The position numbers and the translations under genes are program-made. Positions 7,589-63,144 of a stretch of 64,000 bases of DNA are shown here, one piece after another (position 1 is the first letter of the stretch; the number at the start of each line of letters is the position of its first letter). A model generated the notes under the pieces. That model did no database searches. It was given only the letters and a program-made list of their open reading frames with translations, and had not been told where the DNA came from. Origin of the DNA: Octopus sinensis (lineage: Eukaryota); contig NC_043001.1 of the NCBI RefSeq assembly GCF_006345805.1, forward strand, positions 18,414,001 to 18,478,000, read 5' to 3'.

Positions 7589-10500
7589 ACATAGAAAGGA
7601 ATATTAGTTGAAATATAAAGCATGTTACCCATCCATTATCATTGCATCGAGAGTTGTTTCTCCATTTTCATCAGGTGATCCACCATATCCAACACTTGAG
7701 CCACATTGTCGATACACGTCACACATGGAGCATCCTTGCTCAACAGCATCTAAAGCAGATCTTCCTTTATTGTTGATCACACTCCAAGCTTTAAAACAGA
7801 TTAAAAAAAAACAAAAGAAAACAAAACTGAGAGAAAGGGTCATTGCAGTTGTCTTCTAGCAACACTCCCAACAGACATTACAGTTACCCCCTGTCATCAC
7901 TTCTCACTGAATAGACATCCGAGATACTTACCGCTATCATTACCCACACATCCCAATCTGTTACCTCCCCCAACCCTTCATCAGCCCTTCATGGTTTGGT
8001 CATACTCTTTGTCATTAATAGGGTGCATCCATTTATGATGTAGCTGTAACCAAGCACTTCCTGAGGTGGCATAAACAGCAAAATAGGTAGCTATAAGTGT
8101 TGATTAGTACAATCAAGTTAGATCTTGAATCAATATATCATCATCATCATCGTTTAATGTCCGCTTTCCATGGGTTGGAAGATTTGACTGAGAACTGGCT
8201 TCACCAGGTGGCTTCACCAGGTGGCTTCACCAGGTGGCTTCACCAGGTGGCTTCACCAGGTGGCTTCACCAGGCTCCAATCTTGATCTGGCAGAGTTTCT
8301 ACAGCTGGATGCTCTTCCTAACGCCAACCACTCTGAGAGTATAGTGGGTGCTTTTACGTGCCACTGGCACGAGGGCCAGTCAGGTGGTACTGGTAATGGC
8401 CACGCTCAAATGGTGTTTTTTATGTGCCACCTGCACAGGAGCCAGTCCAGCAGCACTGGCAACAACCTCACTCGAAAGTTTTTCATGTGCCAGTAAGGCG
8501 ACTCTGGTAACGATCATGCTCGAATAGTGCTTTTTACGTATGAAGGGGTGCGGAAAAGTTCCTGGTTTTAAGGGTATTGTGGAAGCCTAGTTGGAGGCCC
8601 GACCTTTTTAGTCCTTTAACAGGGCTTAGAAAAACTTAAGTACCCCTGCAATAAGTGTGTGAATCTGAGAGGGGAATATGTTGAATAAAATCAAAATTAA
8701 CTGGTCGTCCTGTATTTTCTTTTACCCTGGTTTTAAGGGTTTCGTGGGAGCCTAGTTGGAGGCCCAACATTCCAAGTTCTTTTACAGGAATTAGAAAAAT
8801 TTTAAGGACCATTGCAATAAGTGTGTGAATCCGAGAGGGGATTATGTTGAATAAAATCATAATTAACTGATCCTTTTGTATTTTCTTTTGCCCAAAGTCA
8901 GGTATTTTTCCCCACCCCCTTATATGTCTAGTTCTGGAATATAACTGGTTGACGATCTCGTGTGTTAAAAGTCTGTGATAGTTGAGTCCTGGACGGTTTC
9001 TGTTTCTGATACTGTGGATTTCACAAGCTACAGCCATCTCAATTCATCACAGATAAGCATGGAAATAAGTAAATAGAAACCAAGATTGAAACAAATAGAT
9101 TCAAAGTAACACCAGCTAAACCCTTTATCTCCTTCACCAACCAACCAACCAACCAACCAACCAACCAACCAACCAACCAACCAACCAGCCACACCAAACA
9201 ACATAAAATACAACGAACCATCACATGACACAACATAAACATGTTACACATACGCAAATACAGAAAGTAGGTTTAAATGAATGTTTTGCTTTCTGCACCT
9301 AAATCTCCTCTGAGTTCAGTAACCTCATTCTATCTTCAGCTTCCCTCTCACTTCCCCCTCACCCACTTCTCTTCCCATTTCCACCATTTTCCTTCTTTTT
9401 TTCACTCAATTTCTTTCTCCTCCAGCCTCTTGTTTACAAATGAAACTCTCATTATCTCGTGCCCTTCATCTGGTGCAGTCATTTCCTCCAACATGGCAGA
9501 TGTAAAACTTAGCTGTCTTTCTTTTATTTTCTTTCTATCCTCTTCATCCTGAAGAAGGATTCTGACTGAAATGTAGAATATACTCCAATCTCCATAGTAA
9601 TTTCACTTTATTCTTCTTGTCATTTTTCTACCTAATATCAAATGCTATATTAGATGTGCCATGGATAATGCCCATCTTATCGAGACCTCCAATATCTTCA
9701 CAAGATGTAAAGATTACAATTTAGCAAAATCCAGAATTTCACAGGGTGCAGACAGAAAACCACATTACACAATGAGACAAAAATATACAAAATGAAGAAG
9801 GATTCTTACAAAATGTAAGACAACTTTTACAGATGAAAAACTCAGTTTTTTCCCCAAACTTCATAGACCCTACCACTATCATAGCATCACTATGATATTG
9901 TGCCAAGGACACTTTCCTTCCCACTCAGTCCACACAAAAGACAAACAATAAAACAAACACACATGAAAGTAACAGGGGTATCAGTAATCTATTTAGCCAC
10001 AAACGCTGTGCTGGAATGTACAACACCAGGGATAAATGAAAAGGAGCAACAAAAACTAAGTGGCATATTGGCTGAGTTGTTCGAGCATCTGATAGAAAAC
10101 CTCAAGGTATTTGAAGGTGGCAAGCTGGCAGAAACGTTAACATGCCGGGCGAAATGCGTAGCCGTATTTCATCTGCCGTTAATTCCGAGTTCAAATTCCG
10201 CCCAGGTCGACTTTGCTTTTCATCCTTTCGGGGTTGATAAATAAAGTACCAGTTACACACTGGGATCGATGTTATCGACTTAATCCGTTTGTCTGTCCTT
10301 GTTTGTCCTCTCTGTGTTTAGCCCCTTGTGGGTAGTAAAGAAATAGGTATTTCGTCTGCTGTTACGTTCCGAGTTCAAATTCTGCCGAGGTCGACTTAGC
10401 CTTTCATCCTTTCGGGGGTCAATTAAATAAGTACCAGTTACGCACTGGGGTTGATATAATCGACTTAATCCGTTCGTCTGCCCTTGTTTGTCCCCTCCGT

Positions 10501-43700: not shown

Positions 43701-44104
43701 GAGGGGCGGGCACCACAGAAACGGTAAAAGCTGTCATTTAAAACTTGCTAAAATAATATTCGAAATGGTTTATACGATCAGAAATATAATTTCGAAGTAT
43801 TCATGGACTTAAGATGTATTCTGTTGGAATTGTAGTTTATCGTTTCTTTGTTTTCTCGCTATTTCTTCCCATGGGACACACTGTTTATGTATGGCAATAA
43901 AAATGTTAATTTGGCACATAAACGATAATTATTTAAGTTATTACATACTTTTACATTGCAATAAGAAGAGTAAAAGTATTTGTAAAAGTTACCTTTCGCA
44001 TTTGGTGTAATAAAAGGCCACGTATTTATGACTAGAGGTAAGTTTGAACCTGCAGCTCTAGCGACGACAATTAGGAGGAATAACAAACACACCTTCTGTG
44101 ACAT
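20378..44104 (-). CDS. AGA: Aspartylglucosaminidase paralogue B, complete; 8 coding exons, 1053 nt, 350 aa
   Basis: Exons 43993-44104, 32081-32240, 29829-29941, 28474-28586, 26988-27190, 24393-24500, 21018-21151 and 20378-20487. Boundaries are GT-AG and the phases join into one open frame ending in TGA. Motifs NTWPF, HDTIG, GRVGDSP, ATGNGD, RFLPS and GAAC are all present. Confidence 0.97.
21018..21151 (-). CDS. AGA: AGA-B exon 7 ([45 protein letters not shown])
   Basis: Acceptor ttctttcag, donor gtaggt, 134 nt. Confidence 0.95.
21596..21914. mobile_element. Foldback element with ~85-bp terminal inverted repeats around the hammerhead (Penelope-like derivative)
   Basis: 21596-21682 is the reverse complement of 21831-21914 except for one mismatch and small indels. 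Attribution to Penelope-like elements is inferred from the hammerhead. Confidence 0.7.
21728..21788 (+). ncRNA. Type I hammerhead ribozyme motif inside a foldback element
   Basis: Stem I TTGCCG/CGGTAA; core CTGAAGA (21734-21740); stem II GGGG/CCCC; GAAA (21768-21771); stem III ATTG-GAC-CAAT; cleavage triplet AUA (cut after 21782). Confidence 0.75.
23212..23430. mobile_element. piggyBac-type MITE (TTAA-CCCTTTC...GAAAGGG-TTAA); further copies at about 59130-59347 and 59371-59574
   Basis: CCC/GGG termini flanked by TTAA; three similar copies in the window. Confidence 0.75.
23752..23970. mobile_element. hAT/Charlie-type MITE; related elements at about 30056-30812 and 36902-37196
   Basis: TIR cagtgcttttcaa...ttgaaaaccact. 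Confidence 0.6.
24393..24500 (-). CDS. AGA: AGA-B exon 6 ([35 protein letters not shown])
   Basis: Acceptor gtttgcag, donor gtcagt, 108 nt; carries the substrate-binding Arg and Asp of RVGD. Confidence 0.96.
24620..25005 (-). mobile_element. tRNA-derived SINE family 4 (gtggaggcgcaatggcccagtggttagggcagcggact...gtaaccgacggagtgcttcc)
   Basis: Near-identical copies at about 40150-40525(-) and 46888-47205(+, internally deleted); A-box and B-box in the head. Confidence 0.85.
25495..25915 (+). mobile_element. tRNA-derived SINE family 2 with a CORE-like ccttgggcaagtg segment and a (gagtaaa)n tail
   Basis: Near full-length copies also at about 50770-51185(-), 55795-56210(+) and 56495-56900(-). Partial copies at about 1214-1390, 11150-11555, 12105-12245, 20555-20790, 21265-21420, 58755-58915, 62060-62210 and 63775-63930. 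Confidence 0.85.
26988..27190 (-). CDS. AGA: AGA-B exon 5 ([15 protein letters not shown]...[31 protein letters not shown])
   Basis: 203 nt, with the same boundaries as the copy A exon. Confidence 0.96.
28096..28245. repeat. Compound (CCG)n-(CCA)n-(TCA)n trinucleotide tract
   Basis: Read directly from the sequence. Confidence 0.95.
28474..28586 (-). CDS. AGA: AGA-B exon 4 ([38 protein letters not shown])
   Basis: 113 nt, GT-AG. Confidence 0.96.
28675..29051 (+). mobile_element. Non-autonomous Helitron-like element
   Basis: 5' tctatataaa followed by a (ctgt/gt)-rich tract; 3' gcaacgccgggcgatactgCTAGt. Similar 3' ends at about 39855-39878(+) and 22057-22085(-). Confidence 0.6.
29405..29774 (+). 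mobile_element. Second copy of the tRNA-head/hammerhead element (AGA-B intron 3)
   Basis: Same structure. CTGATGA at 29689-29695 and GAAAC at 29717-29721; the left inverted arm retains GAAACGTTGTGTT. Confidence 0.7.
29829..29941 (-). CDS. AGA: AGA-B exon 3 ([37 protein letters not shown])
   Basis: 113 nt, GT-AG. Confidence 0.96.
32081..32240 (-). CDS. AGA: AGA-B exon 2 ([54 protein letters not shown])
   Basis: 160 nt, GT-AG. Confidence 0.96.
32840..33720 (+). mobile_element. Decayed LINE ORF1/gag-like fragment with a CCHC zinc knuckle
   Basis: [14 protein letters not shown] (CX2CX4HX4C) in ORF 33201-33413, followed by an acidic/basic tail ([15 protein letters not shown]); interrupted by stops and frameshifts. 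Confidence 0.65.
34898..35309. mobile_element. Foldback element with ~90-bp TIRs
   Basis: 34898-34989 is inverted at 35220-35309. Confidence 0.75.
37753..37975 (+). mobile_element. mariner transposase C-terminal remnant
   Basis: [23 protein letters not shown] ... [24 protein letters not shown], matching the mariner YSPDLAPSD motif region. Confidence 0.8.
40525..40712. repeat. Long (TA)n-rich microsatellite
   Basis: Read directly from the sequence. Confidence 0.95.
43993..44104 (-). CDS. AGA: AGA-B exon 1 ([37 protein letters not shown])
   Basis: ATG at 44104, signal peptide, donor gtaact. Confidence 0.95.
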
Positions 44105-44554
44105 GATTCAAGAAGAAATGAAATTCAAGTATGGGCTTAGAGTTATCTCCCCTTAGAGGGAAGGTCAGCCATGCAACGAGCTTCGAGGAAAGGGTAATTC
44201 GAAACGACTCCTTATTTCGACTTTAGACTCGTAATTCTTGTTGTTCCATTGTTTATTCTGTGTTGTTTTAACATGTATTTGCTTTGTTTTGTAAATGGGT
44301 TTATTGCCTTCTCCAGAAACTCTTAGTTGATGTTGAAATGTATTGAAAACTATTTGTTTTTCGCTCGAAGTGTTATGAACGAACGGAGTAAAAGTTTGAT
44401 CGATCACGTAATTACCTTTGCGACTGTAAGGGACTTCGAAGCGAAACCTAATTGATTTGATGAATTTATGAGGTTAAAATACATGAAGTGTGGAAGCAAA
44501 TAGAACATTTTTAAAGTTATCAAACCCATGAAACTTCAACTGGCATATATATAC

Positions 44555-44930: not shown

Positions 44931-47331
44931 TATACTGTGGTAACCTTCATACACTGACCGCAACATTTGGAAATAGCCTGTGTTTCGGTAATTATTTATA
45001 GTGACGGCTTTTAAGTGAAATTAAAACACTGTATAATATATGTGTGTGTGTATATAAAGTGTGTAAATTGTGTGTGAAACTTGATGTATTTGATGTACTT
45101 TGAGTCGACACCGCTGAGCGTTTAAGTCTTATGTAATACAATTTAAATGGTTGTAAATTTATTTATTATATATATATATGCGTTACATTGAATCTCAAAT
45201 TTGTTGACTGGGGAATATATATGATTCCATACTGAATTTTAAGTTTAGTATGGTATTTTATAACGTGCATATGTTTGTTTATTCCTCGTTATGACGAATC
45301 TTCCCATCTTTGTTCTTGTTACGAAGCTCGAATATAAAACTCAACCGGCGCCGTATTTTCCATTATTAGTTACTCGCTAATCTTCCTTCTTTTGTACAGG
45401 AGGGAGCCCCAACGACATAAAGTTTATTTATCATCTCCATCGTTTTTATATCCGTCTTTTCTCTGCTTACATGTGTTGGTGGATCTTGAAGAACAAGATT
45501 CTTTTTGCCACATGGACTGGACACATTTTATCGCACCACTGACGCTAGAGAGAGATTGTCTGGGATATGAGACGTTTTGGCGTTGCTGGTTCGATGCCGA
45601 CTTATTTGAAACCAAACGTTTTTATATTTTTATATTCCTCACGTTTTAATGGTTCTCTCTCTTTCCCTCCATCTCTCTGTTTATGTGTGTGAGGGTATTT
45701 CTCGATGTGTAAGAGGAGAGGAAAATTGTTTATGTCAATTGTCTTCCTTGAATAGATTATAATGTCTCTCTCCCTCACTCTATCTATATGTGTATATTTC
45801 TGTTCGTGCATACATGTGTGTGTTCGTGCATTTACTTCCAACACCAGTATTGTCACCAAAACAAGCTGAATGTCCAGTCAGTCATACCAAATTGTCAGCA
45901 TCAGTCCATAGATGTAGATTTTCCTCTACCCTTTTTGGAGAATTCTATATTTTATCTGGAGTTAGTGCCTTCATAGGTGAGGGGTTTTTTTTTGTGATAC
46001 TACGGGTAGAGACCATATATCCTTCAGTCATCATCATCATTTAATGTCCATCTTCCATGCATGGGTCGGACAGTTCACAGGAGCTGGTGGGGTTGAAAAA
46101 CTGCCCTAGGCTACTGTGTCTGTTTTGGCAGCGTTTTTTATGGCTGGATGCCCTTCCTAACATCAACCACTCTGTACAGTGGACTCAGTGCTTTTTACGT
46201 GGCACTAGCATAGGCGAGATTAGTTATAGCATGATTTTTACAGCTGGATACCCTTCCAAATGCCAACCACTTTACAGTGTGGACTGGATGCTTTTACATG
46301 GCATCAGCACTGGCAGGGTCACCAAGTAACTCACAAGAATGGAATTATGAGAGGAGCAGGGGTATTTGAAGAGGGGAACTTGTGTGAGAGGGTGAAAGGT
46401 TAGAGTGTGATAAAAAGGCAGAGACAGAAACAGGTGTCTTGCTATAATGGAGGGGACATTGGAAGACGTGATCCAATATTACGGCGAGCTGGCAGAAACG
46501 TTAGCACGCCGGGTGAAATGCTCAGCAATATTTCATCTGCCTTTACGCTATGAGTTCAAATTCCGCCGAGGTCGACTTTGCCTTTCATCCTTTCGGAGTC
46601 GATAAATTAAGTACCAGTTACGCACTGGGTCGATATAACTGACTTAATCCGTTTGTCTGTCCTTGTTTGTCCTCTCTGTGTTTAGCCCCTTGTGGGTAGT
46701 AAAGAAATAGGTAATGTGTATCATATGTGATGTATGGATGCTGAGGAAATATGTCCTGTGTATCATATGATATATAGTAAAGGCAGAGGGTTAAGAAGGA
46801 CATCAAATGTATTACTCTCACCAATCTTAGAAGACTAAGATATCCTTGTTGACAAGCCCCTTCCTCTAGATGTAGCTATTAAATAACGTGGAGGCACAAT
46901 GGCCCAGTGGTTAGGGCAGCGGACTCGCGGTCATAGGATCGCGGTTTCGATTCCCAGACCGGGCGTTGTGAGTGTTTATTGAGCGAAAACACCTAAAAGC
47001 TCCACGAGGCTCTGGCAGGGGATGGTGGTGATCCCTGCTGTACTCTTTCACCACAACTTTCTCTCACTCTTACTTCCTGTTTCTGTTGTACCAGCACGTG
47101 TCTGTGGAGTGCTCAGCCACTTACACGTTAATTTCACGAGCAGGCTGTTCCGTTGATTCGGATCAACCGGAACCCTCATCGTCGTAACTGACGGAGTGCT
47201 TCCACTATTAAATAACATAAATTCTCTAAACACATTGATGGAACATTAGGATTAAGGGTTAGAAAGAGCAAGGCTAGTTGATAATTGTTTAATAAAATAA
47301 TTTAGAAAGTTTTCTTTCTTTTCAGTTAACA

Positions 47332-47511
47332 ATGTTGAAGCAATTGAAAGCCTTTGCCAAAAATTACACGGTGCTGCTTGTTATGATCCCTTCAGTAATT
47401 GCCGTACATGTTGGTTGGTACTATATGCAATTTAATCCTGATTTAGTTGAGCCTGAAAGACAAGAGATTGGGATTTTGGGAAAATTAATCAAGAAAACCC
47501 CAAAAGAATAA
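47332..47511 (+). CDS. 59-aa single-TM microprotein, homologue of the MKKS upstream ORF uMKKS1 (MLKQLKAFAKNYTVLLVMIPSVIAVHVGWYYMQFNPDLVEPERQEIGILGKLIKKTPKE*)
   Basis: Lies wholly inside exon 47326-47535 (acceptor ttttctttcttttcag, donor gtaagt). ATG has A at -3. NYTVLLVMIPSVIAVHVGWY matches human uMKKS1 DYKVLVVMVPLVGLIHLGWY as recalled; no database search was run. Confidence 0.88.
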   Translation: MLKQLKAFAKNYTVLLVMIPSVIAVHVGWYYMQFNPDLVEPERQEIGILGKLIKKTPKE

Positions 47512-47989
47512 ATAAGAAACTCCAAATTACCCAAAGTAAGTTAATGTTTGTCATAATTATTGGAAAAAACCCCAATTCCTTAAAATTTTTTTTTTGTTTA
47601 ATTTGTTTTCTGTCTGATATCAAGTGAGGGCTAAATTATTAAGGAACATGGCCTAGTGGTTAGGCTGCTGTACTCATGATTGTGAGATCTTGGTTTCAAT
47701 TTCTGGACTGGGTGGTGTGTTGTGTTCTTGAGTAAGCCACATTATTTCATATAGCTCTGCAGTCACCTCAACATCTGATGTTTGGCACACTATGCACCTG
47801 TACAGGTAATGTTGATTTGATGGAGGGACTGAGCTAATATGTAACATGAACATTTTAGCACTACAAGCAAATAGTCTCTGTGATGGTTGCTAAGCAAGTT
47901 GTTGTGGGACCCTCATCTATCTTTTATGACTGGATAATCCACAAACTATCGTAACCAGACTTACATCATTTTAAGGGTATTTTAAGAAA

Positions 47990-48545
47990 TTATAATAATA
48001 ATGAAATTATTGTATACGGTGCTCAGGTGCACCACAACTTGTCAAAAGTGTGTATAAAGCATATGCAGTAATGTACAAATGCCTGCAAAGTGAACAATGT
48101 ATGAGTCAGATACATGCTTGTGTGTGTATGGAGGGGAGAAAATCAGGTGTAGTGTTGGCGAATCTCAGAAAGCATGGAAGTTTTGAAGGATGCAGTGCTC
48201 CGACAACTAACAACTGATGATGGCAGTTTGTTCCATACTTCAGCAACTCTTAGCGTGAAAAAATGTTTCCGAAAGTCATGGGAGCTGTACTGTTTTCTGA
48301 CTTTGTAATCATGCCCACGGGTGTTAGATGGGTGGAGTTTGAAAAGGTGCTCAGAGTTATTGTTAGTAAGATGGTTAATAATTTTATGGGTGTCTGCCAA
48401 GTCAGCTGCCAGACGTTGGAGTTTGAAGGTATCCATGTCCAGGGAAGTAAGGCATTCAGAATATGGCAAATGCCTGATGGAGGGTATTGTCTTGGTTGCA
48501 CGTCGCTAAACAGTTTCCAGACAATATCCTGGGCAAGATAGGGGT
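47990..48545 (-). mobile_element. CR1/L2-type LINE 3' fragment
   Basis: ORF 48143-48469 ends TRGHDYKV..RKHFFTLRVAEVWNKLPSSVV..S..SFK, followed by a 3' UTR with an (att)n tail. Confidence 0.85.
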
Positions 48546-49495
48546 TCCAGACTGGTGATGCAAATTATTTCTACTATTTCAACTTTACTACTTTCTAACC
48601 ACAAAATAATTAATCACTCACTTTGGAGCAGCTATGAAATGAGTCATTCTAGTAATGTATTACATTAAAATTTTGATGTGAATTCATAATGAACTTTGGC
48701 AAGTTAGGCATGAATGTCTGTTTCCACCCCATTAACTTAGTTGATAAGGATTCCTAGGTATCTAAGGTTATCCATATCATCTTGTGCAGTCATGGACAAA
48801 CTACAGTCCGCAGGCCACGTATCTTTCTGAATGACACCTTCAACAAAATAATTACCTTGAATTTTATAATAGTGTGTCTCACCTGATGATGAGCCCTGTC
48901 TCATGTAGCCTGCTTCTTGTAAAATGTTGCCCATGACTGGTCTAGTGGTTTGCCATTGGCAGTGATAGTTGATGGGCTGTTTATGTGCATGATTTGTGTT
49001 TTTGATGAAGATTCTGTTTGCATTGCATAATTGTTCAGCCTATGAATTCTCTTAAGTCAATGATTTCTCTTTGAAGAGAGGGTTGCCAAATCAGGAAGAG
49101 ACTGGGAAAGAGTATACAGCCATCTCATCATCATCATTGTTTAACGTCCGTTTTCCATGCTAGCATGGGTTGGACGGTTCGACTGGGGTCTGGGAAGCCA
49201 GGAGGCTGCACCAGGCTCAGTCTGATCTGGCAGTGTTTCTACAGCTGGATGCCCTTTCTAATGCCAACCACTCCATGAGTGTAGTGGGTGCTTTTTACAT
49301 GCCACCGGCACAGGTGCCAGGCGAGGCTGGCAACGGCCACTTTCGGTTGGTGCTTTTTATGTGCCCAATCTGGATTTCATTGAAAACTATTGAGAGAGTT
49401 TCTTCTTAATTATCAAATTGCATTAAGAAATCTTATACACCACTGATATTAAATTTATATATATATATATTTTTCAATTCTAGGATTTGCCAAAC

Positions 49496-49660
49496 ATGTC
49501 TCTAAGAACAGTTTTCCAGTCGGCTGCTAATTGGGCCCATAGCAACAAGTTTGTTTCCTTGATAGTCATCACATCTGTTATGTACTTAGCAACATATCCA
49601 TTGAAAACTCCAAAAATCGCTACTTCTGAAGAGAGAATTGCTAAATCATCACCAAAATAA
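49496..49660 (+). CDS. 54-aa single-TM microprotein, probable homologue of uMKKS2 (MSLRTVFQSAANWAHSNKFVSLIVITSVMYLATYPLKTPKIATSEERIAKSSPK*)
   Basis: Lies inside exon 49484-49663 (acceptor ttttcaattctag, donor cag|gttagt). ATG has A at -3. Gapless W-x3-N-x13-L-x-T-Y-x-L pattern shared with recalled human uMKKS2 (WIRKNWLLVAGISFIGVHLGTYFL). Confidence 0.78.
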   Translation: MSLRTVFQSAANWAHSNKFVSLIVITSVMYLATYPLKTPKIATSEERIAKSSPK

Positions 49661-51288
49661 CAGGTTAGTTACAAATTTCAAAAATATTTTAATTGCTTTA
49701 ATTTTGTATTCAGGGACTGATCTTCAAAAACTATTCTTTATAGATTAGCAAATGAAAATTGTTTATTTTATTTTTTGTTCCTCTTGGCTTTTAAAAATTG
49801 TATGTGGAAATGGTTGTGTAGTTCTCCTTGTAGTATAAGATATGGATTCAGAGAATTGTGTGGCTATCATAGAAAGCTCTTCTAACAGATTTGGCTAACA
49901 GACCACATAGTAATGCAGAATGAATATCCATGCAGCTGGATACCCTTCTTAATGCCAACCACTGGCAATGGCACTAGATATGATTACTAAGTGACTTGCA
50001 AGACATGACCCCTCAACTGAGAGGGGACTAGTATTGAGGGTGGTGGTTTTATTGCAGAGGATGCGAGGTTGAAATATGATGGAGGAGGTAGGTGTGTGTC
50101 AGGGAGGTAATAGGTGGCAGCAGAGACAACCCCTAATATACATATTAGGAGAAGCCAACATAGGAAGCTTCATGCAGTCACTCAGACTAGAAAACAACAG
50201 GGAATCTTCTTCAAATCACAATCTACTGTATTAAACAAAACATTTTAGGTAATGTAGGGATCACAAATTGATCACATCATCATCATCATCATCGTTTAAT
50301 GTCCGTTTTCTATGCTAGCATGGGTTGGATGGTTTGACCGGAGTCTGGGAAACCAGGAAGCTGCACCAGGCTCCAATCTGATCTGGCAATGTTTCTACAG
50401 CTGGATGCCCTTCCTGATGCCAACCATTCCGTGAGTGTAGTGGGTGCTTTTTACGTGTCACTGGCACAGGGGCCTGAGGAGGCTGGCAACTGGCCACAAT
50501 CGGTTGGTGCTTTTTACGTGTCACCGACACAGACGCTAGTCAGGCGGTGCTGGCATATCCATGAATATCTTTACTCATGGCTCTACTCAATTAGAATTGA
50601 CCTGTAGCAGTAAGACTACAGTAGCAGATATAGCTAAAATTATTGCAAAGTATATTTTACTTGTGAGATTGTCTGTCTCACAATATTTATAGAAAGATTT
50701 TCTTAAATTAAAATTATCAATTATATGAAAAAAAAAAAAAAACTCTGTTCTTTAAAGATTTTTCTATACTCTCTCTTTTACTCTTTTACTTGTTTCAGTC
50801 ATTTGACTGCGGCCATGCTGGAGCACCACCTTTAATCGAGCAACTCGACCCCGGGACTTATTCTTTTGTAAGCCCAGTACTTATTCTATCGGTCTCTTTT
50901 GCCGAACCGCTAAGTAACGGGGACATAAACACACCAGCATCGGTTGTCAAGCAATGCTAGGGGACATACAGACACACAAACACACACACGCATATATATA
51001 TATATATATATATACATATATACGACGGGCTTCTTTCAGTTTCCGTCTACCAAATCCACTCACAAGGCTTTGGTCGGCCCGAGGCTATAGTAGAAGACAC
51101 TTGCCCAAGGTGCCACGCAGTGGGACTGAACCCGGAACCATGTGGTTGGTAGACAAGCTACTTACTACACAGCGACTCCTGCGCCTATATGGTTAATAAT
51201 TTTTAATTTAAGAAAATTTTTCTTCAAACATATATTTGCATATAATATGTGTGTGTATATATTTCATGTGTTTATATGTGTATGTATG

Positions 51289-51321
<33 letters not shown>

Positions 51322-51548
51322 TTACATACATACCTCTCTGTCTCTATATATGTATATATCTGTTTGTGTGTATGTGTATATATATCATCATCATCATCAT
51401 CGTTTAGCATCCACTTTCCATGCTAGCATGGGTTGGACGGTTCAACTGGTGTCTGGGAAGCCAGAAAGCTGCACCAGGCCCAGTCTGATCTGGCAATGTT
51501 TCTACGGCTGGATGCCCTTCCTAACGCCAAGATGCCCTTCTTAACGCC

Positions 51549-51579
<31 letters not shown>

Positions 51580-51621
51580 TACATACATACCTCTCTGTCT
51601 GTATATATGTATATATCTGTC

Positions 51622-51665
<44 letters not shown>

Positions 51666-51810
51666 AGTACATTCTCTGTCTCTATATATGTATATATCTG
51701 TTTGTGTGTGTATATATATATATATATATACACAAGCACACGTTTACCTGTCTGTCTGTTTATATATATATATATATATCTGTATATATTTCAGAGTATA
51801 TAATTGAATA

Positions 51811-52801
51811 ATGCAGGAAGTTACTGAAACTAAACTCCTACGTGGCAAACTCACAGACAAGGAAACAGTGCACCAACTCAATTCACTTAGGCATTTATTT
51901 TCCACCACAGTTGGCCCTTATGGAGGCATTAAGCTACTGCGTAATAACTGCGGGGGTCATGTCACACTGACAAGTTCATCATCCAGGTTGCTGGCTGCTC
52001 TGCGACCTACAAATCCTTTAGCACGACTCATAATTGAAGCCTGTTCAAAGCATTCACATACCTACGGGGATGGGGCTCTCTTCATGGCTCATTTTATCCT
52101 AATTCTGATAGACAAAGCTTTGAAACTTGATTTAGATCATAGGTTGATTACCAAAGTAAATTCTTTTCTTCTTGAATTATTTCTTAGTCATTTAAAATCA
52201 GATGATTTCTCCTGTAAAATGGCTGTAGAAATATCTGATGTTAATTCTTTGTGTCAGGTGGCCAGTACGATGTTGTCATCAAAACCATTGTACCAGCTAG
52301 ACGAGCAGCTGCTAAAGTTGATGAGTTCTGTACTCTTAGAAACCTTCATTAGAAGCCTTCCTTCTGAAAGACAGGACAGTTCCTTAAGACCCATCTTAGA
52401 CAATATACATATCATTGGCATTCCTGGTGAAGAAACACATAATTCTTTCTGTTGTGAAGGATTATTGCTTGAGGCTACAAACATCAAAGAAGTGCTGTCA
52501 TGGCAAACACAGAGAGAATCTCTGGAGAATATTTGTACAGTTGTAGTAAATGTATCTATGGCAGGAGATTCTATAGAGCTACCTCAGTTGACTTATGCCA
52601 GTACCAGCCTTAAAGAACTTGAGCAAAGCTTTCTTTCTCATTTGGAGTCATTCTGTTCTGGACTCATATCAAAAGGCATTAGAATTTTATTCTGCCAGAA
52701 AGTGGTTCACCCTTGTCTAAAAGACCAACTGAGAAGAAACGGTGTATTGGTTTTTGATCGTCTTGGTGCTTTGCTGTGCTCCAAAGTTATCAATTTAACA
52801 G
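51811..52801 (+). CDS. MKKS: MKKS coding exon 1
   Basis: Long ORF from MQEVTETK; donor g|gtaatt at 52802. Confidence 0.95.
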
Positions 52802-55800
52802 GTAATTAGTTAATTATTTTAAACTGACATTTATCATCATCATTATCATTTAGCGTCCGCTTTCCATGCTAGCATGGGTTGGACAGTTCAACTTGGGTCT
52901 GGGAAGCCAGAAGGCTGCACCAGGCCCAGTCTGATCTGGCAATGTTTCTACGTCTGGATGCCCTTCCTAACGCCAACCACTCTGTGAGTATATTGGGTGC
53001 TTTTTACGTGCCACCGGCACAGGTCCCAGACGGGGTTGGAAAACGGCCACGGTCGGATGGTGCTTTTTACGTGCCACCAGCACGGGGACCAGGCGGGTTG
53101 TATTAAATTATGTTTAATATGTCCTTATAATAAATGAACAAGAGCCAATGTTAGCTTTGGCTAAGTTTCTACAGTTGGATGCTCTTTCTCATGTCAATCA
53201 CTAGATGCTTTTTTCCATGTCACCATTCCTAGTGAGGTCTCTAAAAGAACAGGAAAATAATAAAAACTCCTTTGATTATGTGTGTGTGTGTGAACATGGC
53301 TGTTGCTAGTACTGCCTGACTGGCCCTCGTGCTGGTGGCACGTAAAAGCACCCACTACACTCTCGGAGTGGTTGGCGTTAGGAAGGGCATCCAGCTGTAG
53401 AAACTGCCAGATCAGATTGGAGCCTGGTGCAGCCACCTGGTTCACCAGTCCTCAGTCAAATCGTCCAACCCATGCTAGCATGGAAAGCGGAGGTTAAACG
53501 ATGATGATGATATGTGTGTGTGTGTGTGTTTGGTGAGGAGTATTTGAAAGAGTGGGGAGGTTGTTTTATGCTGGATGTTGAGAGGTTGAAGTGTGATAGT
53601 CTTGCTATAGAGGAAATAAATGGCTATGCCATATATAATGGTGGATGGGAGTTACCGGAAAGAAGGTAGAGATGCTGGTGACTAGATACCAGACCATCTC
53701 AAAATACAAGGAGAGTGTAAGAGAGGATAGAGGCAGTGAATGGGGGTGGGAGGGTAATAGTTAGAAATAGGGGTAGAAGTGAATGTAATGAGTGAACAAG
53801 AATGGATATGCAATTGATGGGGAATACCAGGATGGAGAGGGAATAGGGTTAGAGAGATAGAAGTGGCTCAAGAAAGAGAATGTATCAGAAAATAGGGTTG
53901 TAGGGGTGTGATGTGCATGAGGATGTAGCGGTGGGGAGGGAGATGTAGGGATAAATAATAGGTGATGCATGATGGGTGATATGGTAGGGTGTTGAGAATG
54001 ATAGTAGATATGAGAGATGTTAAGACAGGGTATGGCAGAGGAAAGAGTGCAATGGCTGAAGGTACAGAAAAGGGAGCAATGAAAATAGTGTGGGGAAAGA
54101 ATCATAATGAAATGAGAGATGGAAGGGGGTTCCAAGAGGGAAGGGAGGTAACTGGAAGTACAAAGAAAAATTTAGATGGAATATGTGTTGGTTTTGCTCT
54201 CAAGTGATTGCCGCAGCAGGGTAGTGCCATAGACAGAGGAGTGATGATTGCCAGAGAATGAAATGTGGGGAATGCTTGACAGGGTAGAAAGGCAGCGCTC
54301 CGGTCAGGTTTGACTTGGGGCTGGATGCCCTTTCTGATGCTGATCACTAGATGCTTTTTTCATGTCACCATCCCTAGTGAGGTCTCTAAGTAACTTGCAA
54401 GATAAAAAAAGAACAAAAAAAAAAAAAACTCCCTTGATTATGCATGTGTGGGGGTGAGTATTTGTGAGAGTGGGGAGATGGGACCAAACAACAACAATGC
54501 TAGCAGTGATTTAATCTTGATGGTCTATACTGTTTAAAATATATTTTCAGATTCCGTTCCAATTAGTTCATTTTCATCAGCTTGCTCTCCAGATCAATTA
54601 GGGAAAATCAGTAAATTCTCGGTCATGGATGTTTTCGGAAAGCAGTGGCTTCATCTGAATCAGATATCCAGCAGTTTAACTACCCTTGTAGTTTGTAGTC
54701 AAATGGAAGAACAGCTTGAAGAATTAAAGGTTGGTTTGTCTCCTTTCTATAAGTGTTAGAATTGCAAGGAATTCTTTCCTTTTATTGATTTCATGATCAT
54801 CATCATCGTTTAACGTCCGCCTTCCATGCTAGCATGGGTTGTACGGTTCGATTGGGTTCTGGGAAGCCATGAGGCTGCACCAGGCCCAGTCTGATCTGGC
54901 AGTGTTTCTACAGCTGGATGCCCTTCCTAATGCCAACCACTCCGTGAGTGTAGTGGGTGTTTTTTATGTGCCACCGGCACAGGGGCAATATTTTAATTTC
55001 ATCATCACCATTTAATGTCCATCTTTCCATGCTTGTGTGGGTTGGCTGGATTTTGTTGGGGTGGATTTTTTACTGCCAGATGCCCTTCCTGTTGCTAACC
55101 CTTATCTATTTCCAAGTAAGGTAATATTTCCCCATGTCTAAAATTCTCTCAGAAGATTGGAAATGGACACTGCTTGTAGTACAGTGACACTTGTTTACAA
55201 CTATCACAAAATGTCAAGGCTAAAAGACAGTAACACACACACACACGAGGACTTCCTTTCATTTTCCATTTAGCATATTCTCTCACAAGGCTTTGGTTGA
55301 CCCAAGGTAGTGTAGCGGGGAGCTGGCAGAAATGTTAGCACGCTGGGCGAAATGCTTTGTGGTATTTTATCTGTTGCTGCGTTCTGAGTTCAAATTCTGC
55401 CGAGGTCGACTTTGCCTTTCATCCTTTCGGGGTCGATAAATTAAGTACCAGTTACGCACTGGGGTCGATGTAATTGACTTAATCCGTTTGTCTGTCCTTG
55501 TTTGTCCCCTCTATGTTTAGCCCCTTGTGGGCAATAAAGAAATAAGGTATTGTAGAAATTTACCCAAGGTGCTACACAATGCAACTGAACCTGGAACCAT
55601 GTAGTTAGGAGGTAAAGTGCCTACTTTTATTAATGTTTATAAATACTTTTGCTCCTCAAGAATAGCTGGACTTGTACTGCTTCCACTTTGGCTATCTTAT
55701 CTCATTAGTCTCTTCTCTTCCTGCCATCATTCTTGTTGTACCTCTTAGTGTTTGTCGTTTATACAACAAGTGACAGACGAAAAAGGGAGTATATAGGTGC

Positions 55801-58800: not shown

Positions 58801-61800
58801 TGGGTTCAGTCCCACTGCATGGCATCTTGGGCAAGTGTCTTCTAATACATCCCAGGGCCGACCAAAACCATCCTCTGTCAATTTGGTAGATGGAAACTGA
58901 AAGAAGCCTATTGTACGTGTGTTGTGTGTGTGTGTGTTTACCCATGTCTTGACATGTGATGATTGTAAATCAGCCTTCTAAGAAACATATGTCAGGTTTT
59001 GGGGAAATATTACCTTACCTGGAAACAGGTGGAGGTTGGTGATAGAAACAGGTGGAGGTTGGCTGTAGGAAACCTGCCTCAACAAATTCTGTCCTATTCA
59101 TTCTGCCATGTAAAAGTAGACATTAATGTTACCAAGCCGGCTGAAACTGACTCTGGCTCTGTAGTACAAATGTCTTGTTTTCATAAGTTTTGAATTAAAA
59201 ATCTTCCACCAAACCTTAGTCACAATTTATGTTCCTAACACTAGCTTAATGATTACTAAGTTATTTTACTAAATTCTTTGTTATATTTAAAATTAATTGA
59301 AAGAAACACAGAGCATCTCAACAGAAATATGGTCGCAAAAGGGTTAAAATATATAATAGAGAAACAACTCTTAACCCTTTCGTTACCAACCCAGCTGAAA
59401 CCGGCTCTGGCTCTGAGTACAAATGTCTTGTTTTCATAAGTTTTGAATTAAAATCTTCCACCAAACCTTAGTCACAATTTATGTTAAGTTATTTTACTAA
59501 ATTCTTTGTTATCTTTAAAGTAATTGAAAGAAATACAGAGCATCTTAAAATAAATACAGTAATGAAAGGGTTAAAGCAACAAGGATGAATGTATTCATTT
59601 CTCTAAATTCCATCAATCATGAAACAGAAGTGACACTCAGTGATAATCCTTCTAAAGTAGGATAAGTTGGTATTTGTAAGCCTGTGGAATGTCTTTGAAT
59701 GGATTTTAAGTCGAGAGAGGTATTTATGTAGTTCATGTTTAATTCCATTGGTTTTTTTATTTTATGTATTTTGTTCAATTTTAACAGGTGAATTGCAACA
59801 ATGTGATGTTAGCATTCCAGCACCTTCTCAGGACACCGGCTGTACTGCACGGTGGGGGCTGCTGGCAGTTCACTTTGGCTAACAAGCTTAGAGTTGAGGT
59901 AAAACTATTTTCTCTGCATTATTTACATTATTTACATTCAACAGATATTTGTCCTCATCTTTGTTCTTAACACAATGTTTTAGCTGATATACCCTCCAGC
60001 CTTCTTCAGGTGTCTTGGGGAAATTTCATACTATTTTCTCTATTGGTTACTTGGAATATTTTCTTATTTGTTCTATCCTTTACTCATCTCTTCAGTATTT
60101 AGTCTCCAACTCATCTTCTCTTGAAATATTTATCATACACTTCCTTGCTTCCCATCTACAAGGATTCAGGGTCAGTCCCACTGCATGACATGTTGGGCAA
60201 ATGTCTCCTGTTATAGCATCTAGCTGACCAAAGCCTTATGAGTGAGTGGATTTGGTTGGTGGAAATTGAAAGAAGCCTGTTTGGTGTATGTGTGTGTGTG
60301 CATGTATCATCATGATCATCATCATTTAACATCCGGTATGGCTTGGACTCTTTTACCAGGGTTGGTAAGCTGAGGGGCTGCACCAGACTCCAGTCTGATT
60401 TGGCATGGTTTCTACGGCTGGATGCACTTCCTAATGCCAACCATTCCAAGAGTGTAATGAATGCTTTTGTGTGCCACCAGCATGTGTGCCATTTGCGTGA
60501 CACCAGAATCTGCCATGACTATAATTTTACTTGGCTTCATGAGTCTTCTACTGAAGCATGGCAAATTGCTAAAGGAAGGTCTCAGTGATAATTTCTTTTT
60601 GGTTGGTAGAAATTGAAAGAAGCTCTTGCTTGGGATGGAAACTGAAAGAAGCCTATTGTACATGTGTTGTGTGTGTGTGTTCACCCATGTCTTGGCATGT
60701 GATAATTGTAAATCAACCTTCTAAGAAACACGTCAGGTCTTGTGGTGAGCTGGTAGAATTGTTAGCAAACCAGACAAAATACATGTAACAGACTTGGTAA
60801 GATCTGGTACTCAAACCCTCCGCCCGCGTTAAAAGTTAAAATATTTAGAACACTGATTGAGCCAGTCCTTCTCTATGGATCAGGGACCTTGACCTTATTG
60901 GCTCCCTTAGAAAAGCAACTAAATGGAACATATACCAACCTGCTCAGAAAGATACAGAACATCAGTTGGAGATCACTCCCAACACTTAGTAACATTTATG
61001 GAAATCTGATAGCAATATCCCTCAAGAGCAGAAACGGCTACAATTTACTGACCACTGTCATCGAGCAGAGAAAAAGGTTATCTCATCCCTATTCTTATGG
61101 CATCCCTCTGGAAGTGTTTTCTCCAGGAAACTGACATTTCCAGGTACTATATCACAGAACTCATGGCTGGATATTAGAGAGTTTCAATGGAGTTCTGACC
61201 AACCATAGGCTGGTCGAAGGAAGGTGATGATGATGATGAAAGGTCTAGGTCATATGTCATTGCCTCTGCGTGGCCCTATGCTTGAAAGGTGCTTCTCACC
61301 TGCCATAGGCATGGGTGCTAGTTACACGGCACCAGCATCAGCCACATTGCCTCTGTGAGGTCACACACACACATATATATATCATAGTTGTGGTTGATGC
61401 TAGTGTCACATATTGTTTCTCATCATCATCATTGTTTAACGTCTGCTTTCCATGAGGGCTGGTGAACCAGATGGCTGCACCAGGCTTCAATCTTGATCTG
61501 GCAGAGTTTCTACAGCTGGATGCCCTTCCTAACACCAACCACTCTGAGAGTGTAGTGGGTGCTTTTACATGCCACCAGCACGGGGCCAATCAGGCGGTAG
61601 TGGCAACGACCTTGCTGTAATCTTTTACACATGCCACCGGCACAGGTGCCTGTAAGGTGACGCTGGTAATGATCACGCTTGAATGGTGTCTTTTATGTGC
61701 CATCGGCACGGAGGCCAGATAGCCGCTCTGGCAACGATCACGCCTGAATTGTGCTCTTTAAGGTGACACTGGTAACGATCACCCTCAAATGGTGCCTTTT

Positions 61801-62657: not shown

Positions 62658-63144
62658 TTTTTGCCTATTTCAGGTTTCTGAAAATTTAGAAAGCTTCTCC
62701 AGTAAACTGGATTGTTCCGAGTCCCAGTTATTGCAGCTGTGTGATTATCTATGCACAAGTTTGGAACAAGCTGTTTCCCCATCTTCTCAGCAGGGCAAGA
62801 AATGTTTCACCCATCCTTCAGCTGGTCATCTTTGGATACAGGATGACCATGAAGTTAACGCAGAAAAAACTTGTTCATGTGGTGTGCTTTGTTGTAGTTT
62901 GTCAGATTTGAAACTTCAACCTTTAGAACATTCTCCTTCATTTGACAGATTTTCTAAGAAAGAGCTTTATGGCTCTTATAAACCTCTTGATACAATATCC
63001 AGTTCTGAACCTCCTAAGAAACCTCTTCTAATGGACTGCTTTATTCCATGGCAAACTGCTGTAGAAATATCGGTACTTCTAGCCAATATGGCTCTTAGTA
63101 CCAATCAGTTTATCTTTGACACCAACTGTAAACCATCAACATAG
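51811..63144 (+). CDS. MKKS: McKusick-Kaufman/Bardet-Biedl syndrome 6 chaperonin-like protein; 4 coding exons, 1752 nt, 583 aa
   Basis: Exons 51811-52801 (acceptor at 51794), 54551-54729, 59788-59898 and 62674-63144 join in frame. Motifs GP.G.IK..N..GGHV.LTS.SS.LL, GDGALF, LSSKP, CQKVVHP.LK..L....DRLG, GGGC, GHLW, CSCG and LMDC are present. The exon pattern (991/179/111/471) parallels human MKKS as recalled. Confidence 0.93.
54551..54729 (+). CDS. MKKS: MKKS coding exon 2 (DSVPISSFSSACSPDQLGKI...VVCSQMEEQLEELK)
   Basis: Acceptor attttcag, donor gttggt; phase 1 in, phase 0 out. Confidence 0.88.
59788..59898 (+). CDS. MKKS: MKKS coding exon 3 (VNCNNVMLAFQHLLRTPAVLHGGGCWQFTLANKLRVE)
   Basis: Acceptor ttttaacag, donor gtaaaa, 111 nt, GGGC motif. 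Confidence 0.92.
60797..61240 (+). mobile_element. Decayed RTE-like LINE C-terminal fragment
   Basis: KIWYSN..LKVKIFRTLIEPVLLYGS..LT....LNGTYTNLLRKIQNISW. Confidence 0.65.
62413..62657. repeat. (ATT)n tract of about 245 bp just upstream of the last MKKS acceptor
   Basis: Read directly from the sequence. Confidence 0.95.
62674..63144 (+). CDS. MKKS: MKKS last coding exon (VSENLESF...IFDTNCKPST*)
   Basis: Acceptor ttttttgcctatttcag; ends in TAG at 63142-63144. Confidence 0.92.
   Translation, partial: VSENLESFSSKLDCSESQLLQLCDYLCTSLEQAVSPSSQQGKKCFTHPSAGHLWIQDDHEVNAEKTCSCGVLCCSLSDLKLQPLEHSPSFDRFSKKELYGSYKPLDTISSSEPPKKPLLMDCFIPWQTAVEISVLLANMALSTNQFIFDTNCKPST

Follow-up and report, generated by a model that had tools for sequence, protein, structure and literature searches.

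The window analysed in this work is a stretch of 64,000 nucleotides from the genome of Octopus sinensis (contig NC_043001.1, positions 18,414,001 to 18,478,000 of the forward strand), on which lies the gene of the ciliary chaperonin MKKS/BBS6. The human MKKS locus is a classic example of an upstream open reading frame (uORF) that encodes a real protein. The octopus locus is a well-supported orthologue of this known polycistronic locus, and the coupling between its first upstream frame and MKKS is demonstrably ancient. Very probably, the octopus gene gives rise to an mRNA with three cistrons, in which a leader exon is followed by uORF1 (identified by similarity as the orthologue of human uMKKS1), then by uORF2 (a cephalopod frame), and finally by MKKS itself. 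Going further back, it is fairly probable that the MKKS mRNA has encoded a uMKKS1-family microprotein from the last common bilaterian ancestor onward at the latest, usually with another membrane microprotein lying between them. The parts of the octopus gene are as follows.

44131..44193 (+): 3′ part of exon 0, a leader exon 5′ of exon 1, with donor GTAATT after 44193; from the O. vulgaris protein model P0001 (see below)
47326..47535 (+): exon 1, carrier of uORF1; acceptor TTTCAG, donor GTAAGT, both junctions used by P0001
47332..47511 (+): uORF1, 59 aa, uMKKS1 orthologue, predicted single-pass membrane microprotein with the motif VLxVMxP...H-x-G-W-Y
49484..49663 (+): exon 2, carrier of uORF2; acceptor TTCTAG (used by P0001), donor GTTAGT
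49496..49660 (+): uORF2, 54 aa, predicted second single-pass membrane microprotein, conserved in cephalopods, at the position of vertebrate uMKKS2
51795..52801 (+): exon 3, with a 16-nt leader, the MKKS/BBS6 ATG at 51811 and the first 330 codons; acceptor TTTCAG, donor GTAATT
54559..54732 (+): MKKS coding exon 4, approximate limits (tblastn, Sepia MKKS residues 338–395)
59794..59913 (+): MKKS coding exon 5, approximate limits (tblastn, Sepia MKKS residues 397–436)
62671..63123 (+): last MKKS coding exon, approximate limits (tblastn, Sepia MKKS residues 431–585)

An earlier note on this DNA, made from the letters alone, had proposed three exons with canonical splice sites that carry in turn a 59-aa ORF, a 54-aa ORF and the beginning of MKKS, and re-reading of the window gave the same exons, sites and frames. 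It had also placed an A at position −3 of every start ATG and predicted short spacers after splicing. On recomputation both agree: A stands at −3 in three of three cases (AACAATGT for uORF1, AAACATGT for uORF2 and AATAATGC for MKKS), and the predicted spliced spacers are 36 nt from the uORF1 stop to the uORF2 ATG and 19 nt from the uORF2 stop to the MKKS ATG. The donor of exon 2 lies 3 nt past the stop codon of uORF2, and the frame opened by the MKKS ATG at 51811 remains open for 330 codons, as far as the donor of exon 3. From the uORF1 ATG to the MKKS ATG there is a single out-of-frame ATG, at 47408. Exon 0 contains ATGs at 44103, 44118, 44131 and 44171; once spliced, the one at 44131 would be in frame with uORF1 with no stop codon between them, and would lengthen the microprotein by 23 residues. 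In addition, an AATAAA at 47507–47512 lies across the stop codon of uORF1, which may be an internal polyadenylation signal or a chance occurrence in AT-rich sequence.

First of all, uORF1 can be identified by its similarity to the uMKKS1 family. With the human uMKKS sequences taken from the supplement of PMC7066179 (and also PMC8448870), BLASTP aligned octopus uORF1 to human uMKKS1 with 36.6 bits and an E-value of 2e-10, 15 of 42 residues being identical. A hidden Markov model (HMM) of the family was then built without octopus, from human, a rodent, Xenopus, thrips and unplaced metazoans (see L001/L002 below), and was run against all the ATG-initiated ORFs in the window that have 25 aa or more, 518 in number. 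The ORF at 47332–47511 scored 34.2 bits (E 4.5e-10), the next best 4.0 bits, and none of 2000 shuffled versions of uORF1 reached its score. Since uORF1 is the sole significant match in the window and is never equalled by its shuffles, it is not a chance ORF; nor is uORF2, as both peptides are conserved in cuttlefish (see below). A search of 1.84 billion representative proteins with the uORF1 profile returned 50 clusters at E ≤1e-3, whose named members come from marsupials, a bird, a lizard, a frog, teleosts, a flea, a sand fly, Aedes mosquitoes and a beetle, every one under the label 'uncharacterized'; Pfam holds no family for uORF1 or uORF2. The consensus of the family is F.K.Y.VLIVM.P...LIH.GWY..Q.N..FV, in which His26 and Trp29 (octopus numbering) are invariant in 34 of 34 diverse members. 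The octopus peptide has the family's features, namely a size of about 55–80 aa and a hydrophobic helix followed by H-x-G-W(Y). Its hydropathy profile has one transmembrane-like segment (Kyte-Doolittle maximum 2.35, residues 14–28), and the AlphaFold2 model made from the family alignment has helices at residues 2–11 and 13–33 with a mean pLDDT of 84. These profile and alignment scores make the orthology of octopus uORF1 to human uMKKS1 (micro-MKKS63) robust. The claim that the first peptide is retained in a mollusc, together with the uMKKS1 profile search that had been proposed as a check on it, is thus borne out.

The main ORF is recognised as MKKS/BBS6 by similarity of the same kind. The ORF of exon 3 matches the Pfam family Cpn60_TCP1 (PF00118) with an E-value of 4.4e-34 and 118 bits. 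Its named best matches in a search of 5.8 billion proteins are frog MKKS, at 121–126 bits, as against at most 44 bits for the best solved chain of CCT, thermosome or ancestral chaperonin in the PDB, the three kinds of chaperonin that made up the explicit comparison set (BBS10 and BBS12 stood outside it). The earlier assignment of the third ORF to MKKS is therefore upheld.

Selection on the two microproteins was assessed between octopus and the cuttlefish Sepia esculenta. The window aligns to chromosome OX597818.1 of Octopus vulgaris with 92–97% identity over most of the 24 kb aligned (one short block has 86%), and a comparison between these two octopuses has no power for selection, because the introns are equally similar (97–99.8%); Sepia was used in place of O. 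vulgaris. Octopus and Sepia share 47% identity in uORF1, 50% in uORF2 and 42% in the N-terminal 330 aa of MKKS (43% when the octopus exon is set against the Sepia MKKS of 589 aa). Identity at the first, second and third codon positions is 0.60, 0.74 and 0.40 for uORF1 and 0.62, 0.72 and 0.32 for uORF2. In the dN/dS-type comparison across cephalopods for which the earlier note had called, the proportion of nonsynonymous differences (pN) of the uORFs is 0.34, far below the proportion of synonymous differences (pS) of 0.74–0.80 (0.74 in uORF1); synonymous sites are saturated, and third positions are near random. Since pN is far below pS and the identities are at least those of MKKS, both uORFs are constrained at the protein level no less strongly than MKKS, and the substitution pattern shows purifying selection on both microproteins. 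The disruption of the ORFs in related species, which the earlier note feared as a sign against it, was not seen: both ORFs are intact in Sepia, and in O. vulgaris uORF2 is identical to that of the window and uORF1 has one conservative residue change.

The linkage of these cistrons can be read directly on RNA in other animals. In Sepia esculenta, the uORF1 peptide (P0082) occurs on 24 RNA contigs. Each of the four that were read (L011–L014) carries a uORF1 of 58 aa, a uORF2 of 50 aa and an MKKS of 589 aa, with spacers of 54 nt between uORF1 and uORF2 and 18 nt between uORF2 and MKKS. The libraries SRR23936182 and SRR25097173 are larval RNA-seq of this species (PMC10571815). The Sepia contigs occur in two forms, L012/L013 (at 502–645) and L011/L014, with a length difference of some 130 nt in the stretch from uORF2 to the MKKS ATG; the insert opens with GTATGG and its end is not AG, so that it is not a simple retained intron, and the longer form has extra upstream ATGs and an N-terminal extension of MKKS. 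In the L001/L002 metazoan, the RNA contigs carry ORFs of 81 aa and 75 aa and then an MKKS of 572 aa. Their alignment to genomic DNA (contig L004) requires the removal of introns, and there an intron of 186 nt separates the uORF1 exon from the exon with uORF2 and the start of MKKS. The same three-cistron structure was found in more than 10 libraries; contigs of this type come from SRR326223xx, SRR16709595, SRR14865067 and SRR26159591, and their MKKS is 30–33% identical to all those compared, which places no taxon. Several uORF1 clusters of this animal (P0047–P0051) differ only by changes of the C-to-T type (P>F/L, A>V, S>F, H>Y), and are probably artefactual entries from assemblies of bisulfite-converted reads. 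Marine metatranscriptome contigs (L016–L018) likewise carry a uORF1 of 69 aa, a transmembrane (TM) ORF of 64 aa and an MKKS of 571 aa.

Among insects, RNA contigs of the thrips Megalurothrips usitatus carry a 68-aa family member (…LMHYGW…) lying 49 nt 5′ of an MKKS-like ORF of 559 aa. Alignment to the genome places two introns inside the thrips uORF, which is spliced onto the MKKS exons; no second cistron was found between the two ORFs on these contigs. In Xenopus tropicalis, a uMKKS1 of 64 aa, which is annotated, and a uMKKS2 of 51 aa, which is absent from the gene calls of the locus, lie within 1 kb 5′ of MKKS. Mosquitoes keep the uMKKS1-family protein as a stand-alone gene of 68–71 aa (AAEL006255 in A. 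aegypti), and around the Aedes albopictus member (L015, KQ562974.1 44728–64934, gene at 10001–10207) no MKKS-like sequence was found within 10 kb on either side. As the microprotein persists there with no adjacent MKKS, it is suggested to be the more indispensable of the two products. Together with the mammals, the linkage of uORF1 to MKKS is thus present in Deuterostomia, Lophotrochozoa and Ecdysozoa, and its occurrence in a cephalopod, an insect and vertebrates makes the coupling older than the split between molluscs, insects and vertebrates. That is to say, the order and linkage that the earlier note had claimed stand on spliced RNA in Sepia, thrips and two other metazoans, and in octopus itself by prediction; its dating to the bilaterian ancestor is supported for uORF1 and MKKS by three superclades, and is unproven for uORF2 as uMKKS2, the similarity of which is non-significant.

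For octopus, the transcript structure is approached through an annotation of its relative. In a first single-sequence, word-indexed search, a method too insensitive for this peptide, the sole match to uORF1 was P0001 (L003 10001–15441), an Octopus vulgaris entry of 79 aa under the name 'hypothetical predicted protein'. Joining window positions 44131–44193, 47326–47413, 47494–47535 and 49484 onward reproduces P0001 exactly, and therefore the O. vulgaris annotation uses the junctions 44193/47326 and 47535/49484. P0001 is a mis-modelled reading of the octopus MKKS leader: after exon 0 it keeps the first 27 codons of uORF1, then invents an 80-nt GT..AG mini-intron (47414–47493) within uORF1, and reads the tail of exon 1 and exon 2 out of frame. 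It supports the junction of exon 1 to exon 2 (47535/49484) and not that of exon 2 to exon 3 (49663/51795). In a nucleotide alignment of the predicted octopus mRNA with the Sepia mRNA only part of MKKS aligns, so that a base-by-base check of the junctions could not be made. The splice sites, the O. vulgaris model (for exon 1 to exon 2) and the Sepia RNA point to the presence of all three exons on one octopus mRNA.

The second cistron has a different history of evidence. Its counterpart in Sepia is the 50-aa ORF at the same position. A small TM ORF between uMKKS1 and the MKKS ATG is found in octopus, Sepia, X. tropicalis (L009 9642–9797), the L001/L002 metazoan and the marine contig, and across vertebrates, cephalopods and the two other metazoans these second cistrons agree in position and size, and their products in having one hydrophobic segment and a net positive charge. 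Retention of uMKKS2 as such, which the earlier note had claimed and for which it had proposed a profile search, was not supported, and what is retained, with conservation between octopus and Sepia, is a second TM cistron in this place. BLASTP of uORF2 against vertebrate uMKKS2 gave E 0.085 over 9 residues only. An HMM of seven vertebrate uMKKS2 sequences scored 0.2 bits on octopus uORF2, equalled by 337 of 2000 shuffles. A cephalopod profile (octopus, Sepia and the second ORF of the marine contig) detected no second-cistron ORF in other taxa, and against vertebrate uMKKS2 it gave an hhalign P of 0.052 with a probability of 1%. Counting also the HMM of the L001/L002 metazoan, none of five approaches was significant for uORF2. 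Therefore, conservation of uORF2 can be demonstrated within cephalopods only, and its homology to uMKKS2 is a matter of position; orthology is possible but unproven.

It is accordingly quite possible, as a tentative reading, that octopus uORF2 is not an orthologue of uMKKS2, the two having independent origins or having diverged past recognition, and that vertebrate uMKKS2 is a duplicate of uMKKS1. The scores just given speak for this, as do the thrips, which has no second cistron, and the closeness of vertebrate uMKKS2 to the uMKKS1 family: alignment of the two (A7 vs A9) by hhalign gave P 2.9e-4 with 36% identity over 28 columns, the uMKKS2 profile scores 12 bits on octopus uORF1, which none of 2000 shuffles reached, and vertebrate uMKKS2 has a TM segment followed by H-x-G-x-Y, as in the uMKKS1 family. 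These similarities suggest that vertebrate uMKKS2 is an old duplicate of uMKKS1, and the two may be tandem paralogues. On the other side stand the common position, size, hydrophobic segment and charge of the second cistrons, and the fact that the weak hhalign match between uORF2 and uMKKS2 is collinear, with W...N...L-x-T-Y at identical spacing. A separate observation on the pair is a protein of Liparis tanakae (P0055, TNN27614.1, 125 aa) with uMKKS1-like and uMKKS2-like halves in one chain, which is either a real fusion or an artefact of annotation or assembly.

Several points weigh against the octopus three-cistron mRNA. Its junction of exon 2 to exon 3 is a predicted one; the O. vulgaris annotation divides the locus into two gene models; the AATAAA at 47507 lies over the uORF1 stop and human MKKS has short isoforms with the uORFs only, so that some transcripts may stop before MKKS; uORF2 has no significant similarity to uMKKS2; and uORFs of 59 and 54 codons with spacers of 36 and 19 nt are poor substrates for reinitiation, which leaves the route of MKKS translation puzzling. 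By analogy, the AATAAA recalls the polyadenylation sites within the 5′ untranslated region (5′UTR) of human MKKS, and it may be a product of chance in AT-rich DNA. The two O. vulgaris models, the AATAAA, the human uORF-only isoforms (PMC13577902; Akimoto as cited in PMC11837024) and the stand-alone Aedes gene would also fit a different arrangement, in which the small exons form a separate microprotein gene beside MKKS, with a transcript end of its own and a separate start site for MKKS, the linkage then being conserved synteny with no polycistron. This is unlikely, however: the uORF2 stop is followed after 3 nt by a good donor, the MKKS ATG is preceded at 16 nt by a good acceptor, the cistrons lie on single spliced RNA contigs in Sepia, thrips, the L001/L002 metazoan and the marine metatranscriptome, and short isoforms are compatible with a coexisting polycistronic form. 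Lastly, the idea that the uORFs are mere translational brakes on MKKS with peptides of no consequence, to which the repression of MKKS reporters by the human uORFs (PMC11837024, PMC7530721) lends some colour, is highly improbable, as the amino acids are conserved while synonymous sites are saturated, the His and Trp are invariant in 34 diverse members, mosquitoes keep the family as a stand-alone gene, and the human peptide is abundant and required for respiration (PMC13577902).

Under the three-cistron reading, the expression of the octopus gene may be pictured as follows. Transcription would begin from the leader exon near 44.1 kb, and splicing would then produce the three-cistron mRNA. Scanning ribosomes would reach the ATGs of uORF1 and uORF2 first; the product of uORF1 would be the mollusc uMKKS1 (micro-MKKS63), a small single-pass membrane protein, and that of uORF2 another small membrane protein, with MKKS starting 19 nt downstream. 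As scanning meets these two ATGs before that of MKKS, and each has an A at −3, the main products may be expected to be the microproteins. By analogy with the human reporters, MKKS would be made by a minority of ribosomes, either through leaky scanning past both ATGs or through reinitiation. Leaky scanning appears feasible because the ATG at 47408 is the only out-of-frame one on the way to MKKS, and reinitiation would be inefficient because of the spacers of 36 and 19 nt.

It has been reported that the 5′UTR of human and mouse MKKS contains uMKKS1 and uMKKS2 and that these repress reporters (Akimoto et al. 2013, in the part reported by PMC11837024); the human MKKS uORFs also appear as translation repressors in PMC7530721. 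Human uMKKS1 has 63 aa (micro-MKKS63, NCBI LOC128706665, Ensembl ENSG00000285508) and uMKKS2 has 50 aa. Human uMKKS1 is found on mitochondria in human cells (PMC7066179, PMC13577902), and recent work reports that the human locus yields mainly the 63-aa microprotein rather than MKKS, respiration being dependent on the peptide (PMC13577902). From this analogy we infer that octopus uORF1 and uORF2 would be translated, mitochondrial and repressive of MKKS translation. In published accounts uMKKS1 and uMKKS2 are called conserved in mammals or 'highly conserved', with no mention of invertebrates in those consulted. In agreement with the earlier note, which knew of no description outside vertebrates, no published account of the coupling of uMKKS to MKKS outside vertebrates was found in the literature, with the reservation that the taxonomic range determined for the MKKS uORF in the ESUCA paper (Fig. 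2a, Table S2) may list invertebrate hits.

The octopus locus resembles that of human and mouse in having a small ORF, another small ORF and MKKS in this order on one strand, in the predicted single-pass, positively charged nature of the upstream products, and in the location of the MKKS ATG in a large downstream exon; human uMKKS1, homologous to octopus uORF1, also has a TM helix followed by H-x-G-W-Y. It differs in that the octopus uORFs lie in exons of their own with introns of about 2 kb between them, that its spacers are very short, and that its uORF2 has no significant uMKKS2 similarity. MIEF1-MP (the uORF of MIEF1) and the uORF of SLC35A4, which encode conserved mitochondrial microproteins on bicistronic mRNAs, are similar to the octopus case, in that a conserved small protein precedes an unrelated main ORF and a functional peptide and a translational brake are both possible (PMC7530721, PMC11837024), but they belong to other protein families with one upstream cistron, and no homology was seen. 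As in the delayed reinitiation of ATF4/GCN4, octopus MKKS has two uORFs in series with the second near the main ATG; unlike those, its uORFs are long (59/54 codons), code for conserved proteins and do not reach into the main ORF. Stress-dependent control of the ATF4/GCN4 type in octopus MKKS is pure speculation.

If the fairly probable descent from the bilaterian ancestor is true, the locus would be among the oldest stable polycistronic protein-coding arrangements in animals, and a functional reason would be implied for coupling a mitochondrial microprotein to a ciliary chaperonin. The occurrence of the same microprotein 5′ of MKKS on spliced RNAs of cephalopods and an insect recasts what had been described as a mammalian or vertebrate feature as an ancient gene architecture kept by selection, and invertebrate models could be used to ask why the two genes are coupled. 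The family profile, with its invariant His and Trp, is a means to annotate an overlooked protein in invertebrate genomes, and the analysis has exposed the mis-annotation of the O. vulgaris gene model; for the second cistron, evolution is so rapid that sequence comparison cannot follow it.

As for the surroundings of the gene, the upstream neighbour on the opposite strand encodes an Asparaginase_2 domain (L003 1–9974, minus strand; in the window to about 44080). The called range of this gene ends 27 bp from the start of P0001 in exon 0, which suggests a bidirectional promoter shared by the two. A SINE-like repeat with the core CGTCCGTTTTCCATGCTAGCATGGGTTGGA occurs in 15 copies in the window against 0 expected (for example at 49145, 50300, 51408 and 52854), with copies within introns 1, 2 and 3 of the MKKS gene. 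Long microsatellite tracts of TA, CA and TG extend from 51240 to 51790, close against the acceptor of exon 3, and are the source of many spurious low-complexity ORFs. Finally, intron 1 contains an ORF of 108 aa on the minus strand (48143–48469), including …FRKHFFTLRVAEVWNKLPSSVV…, which we take to resemble the C-terminal part of a retrotransposon reverse transcriptase.

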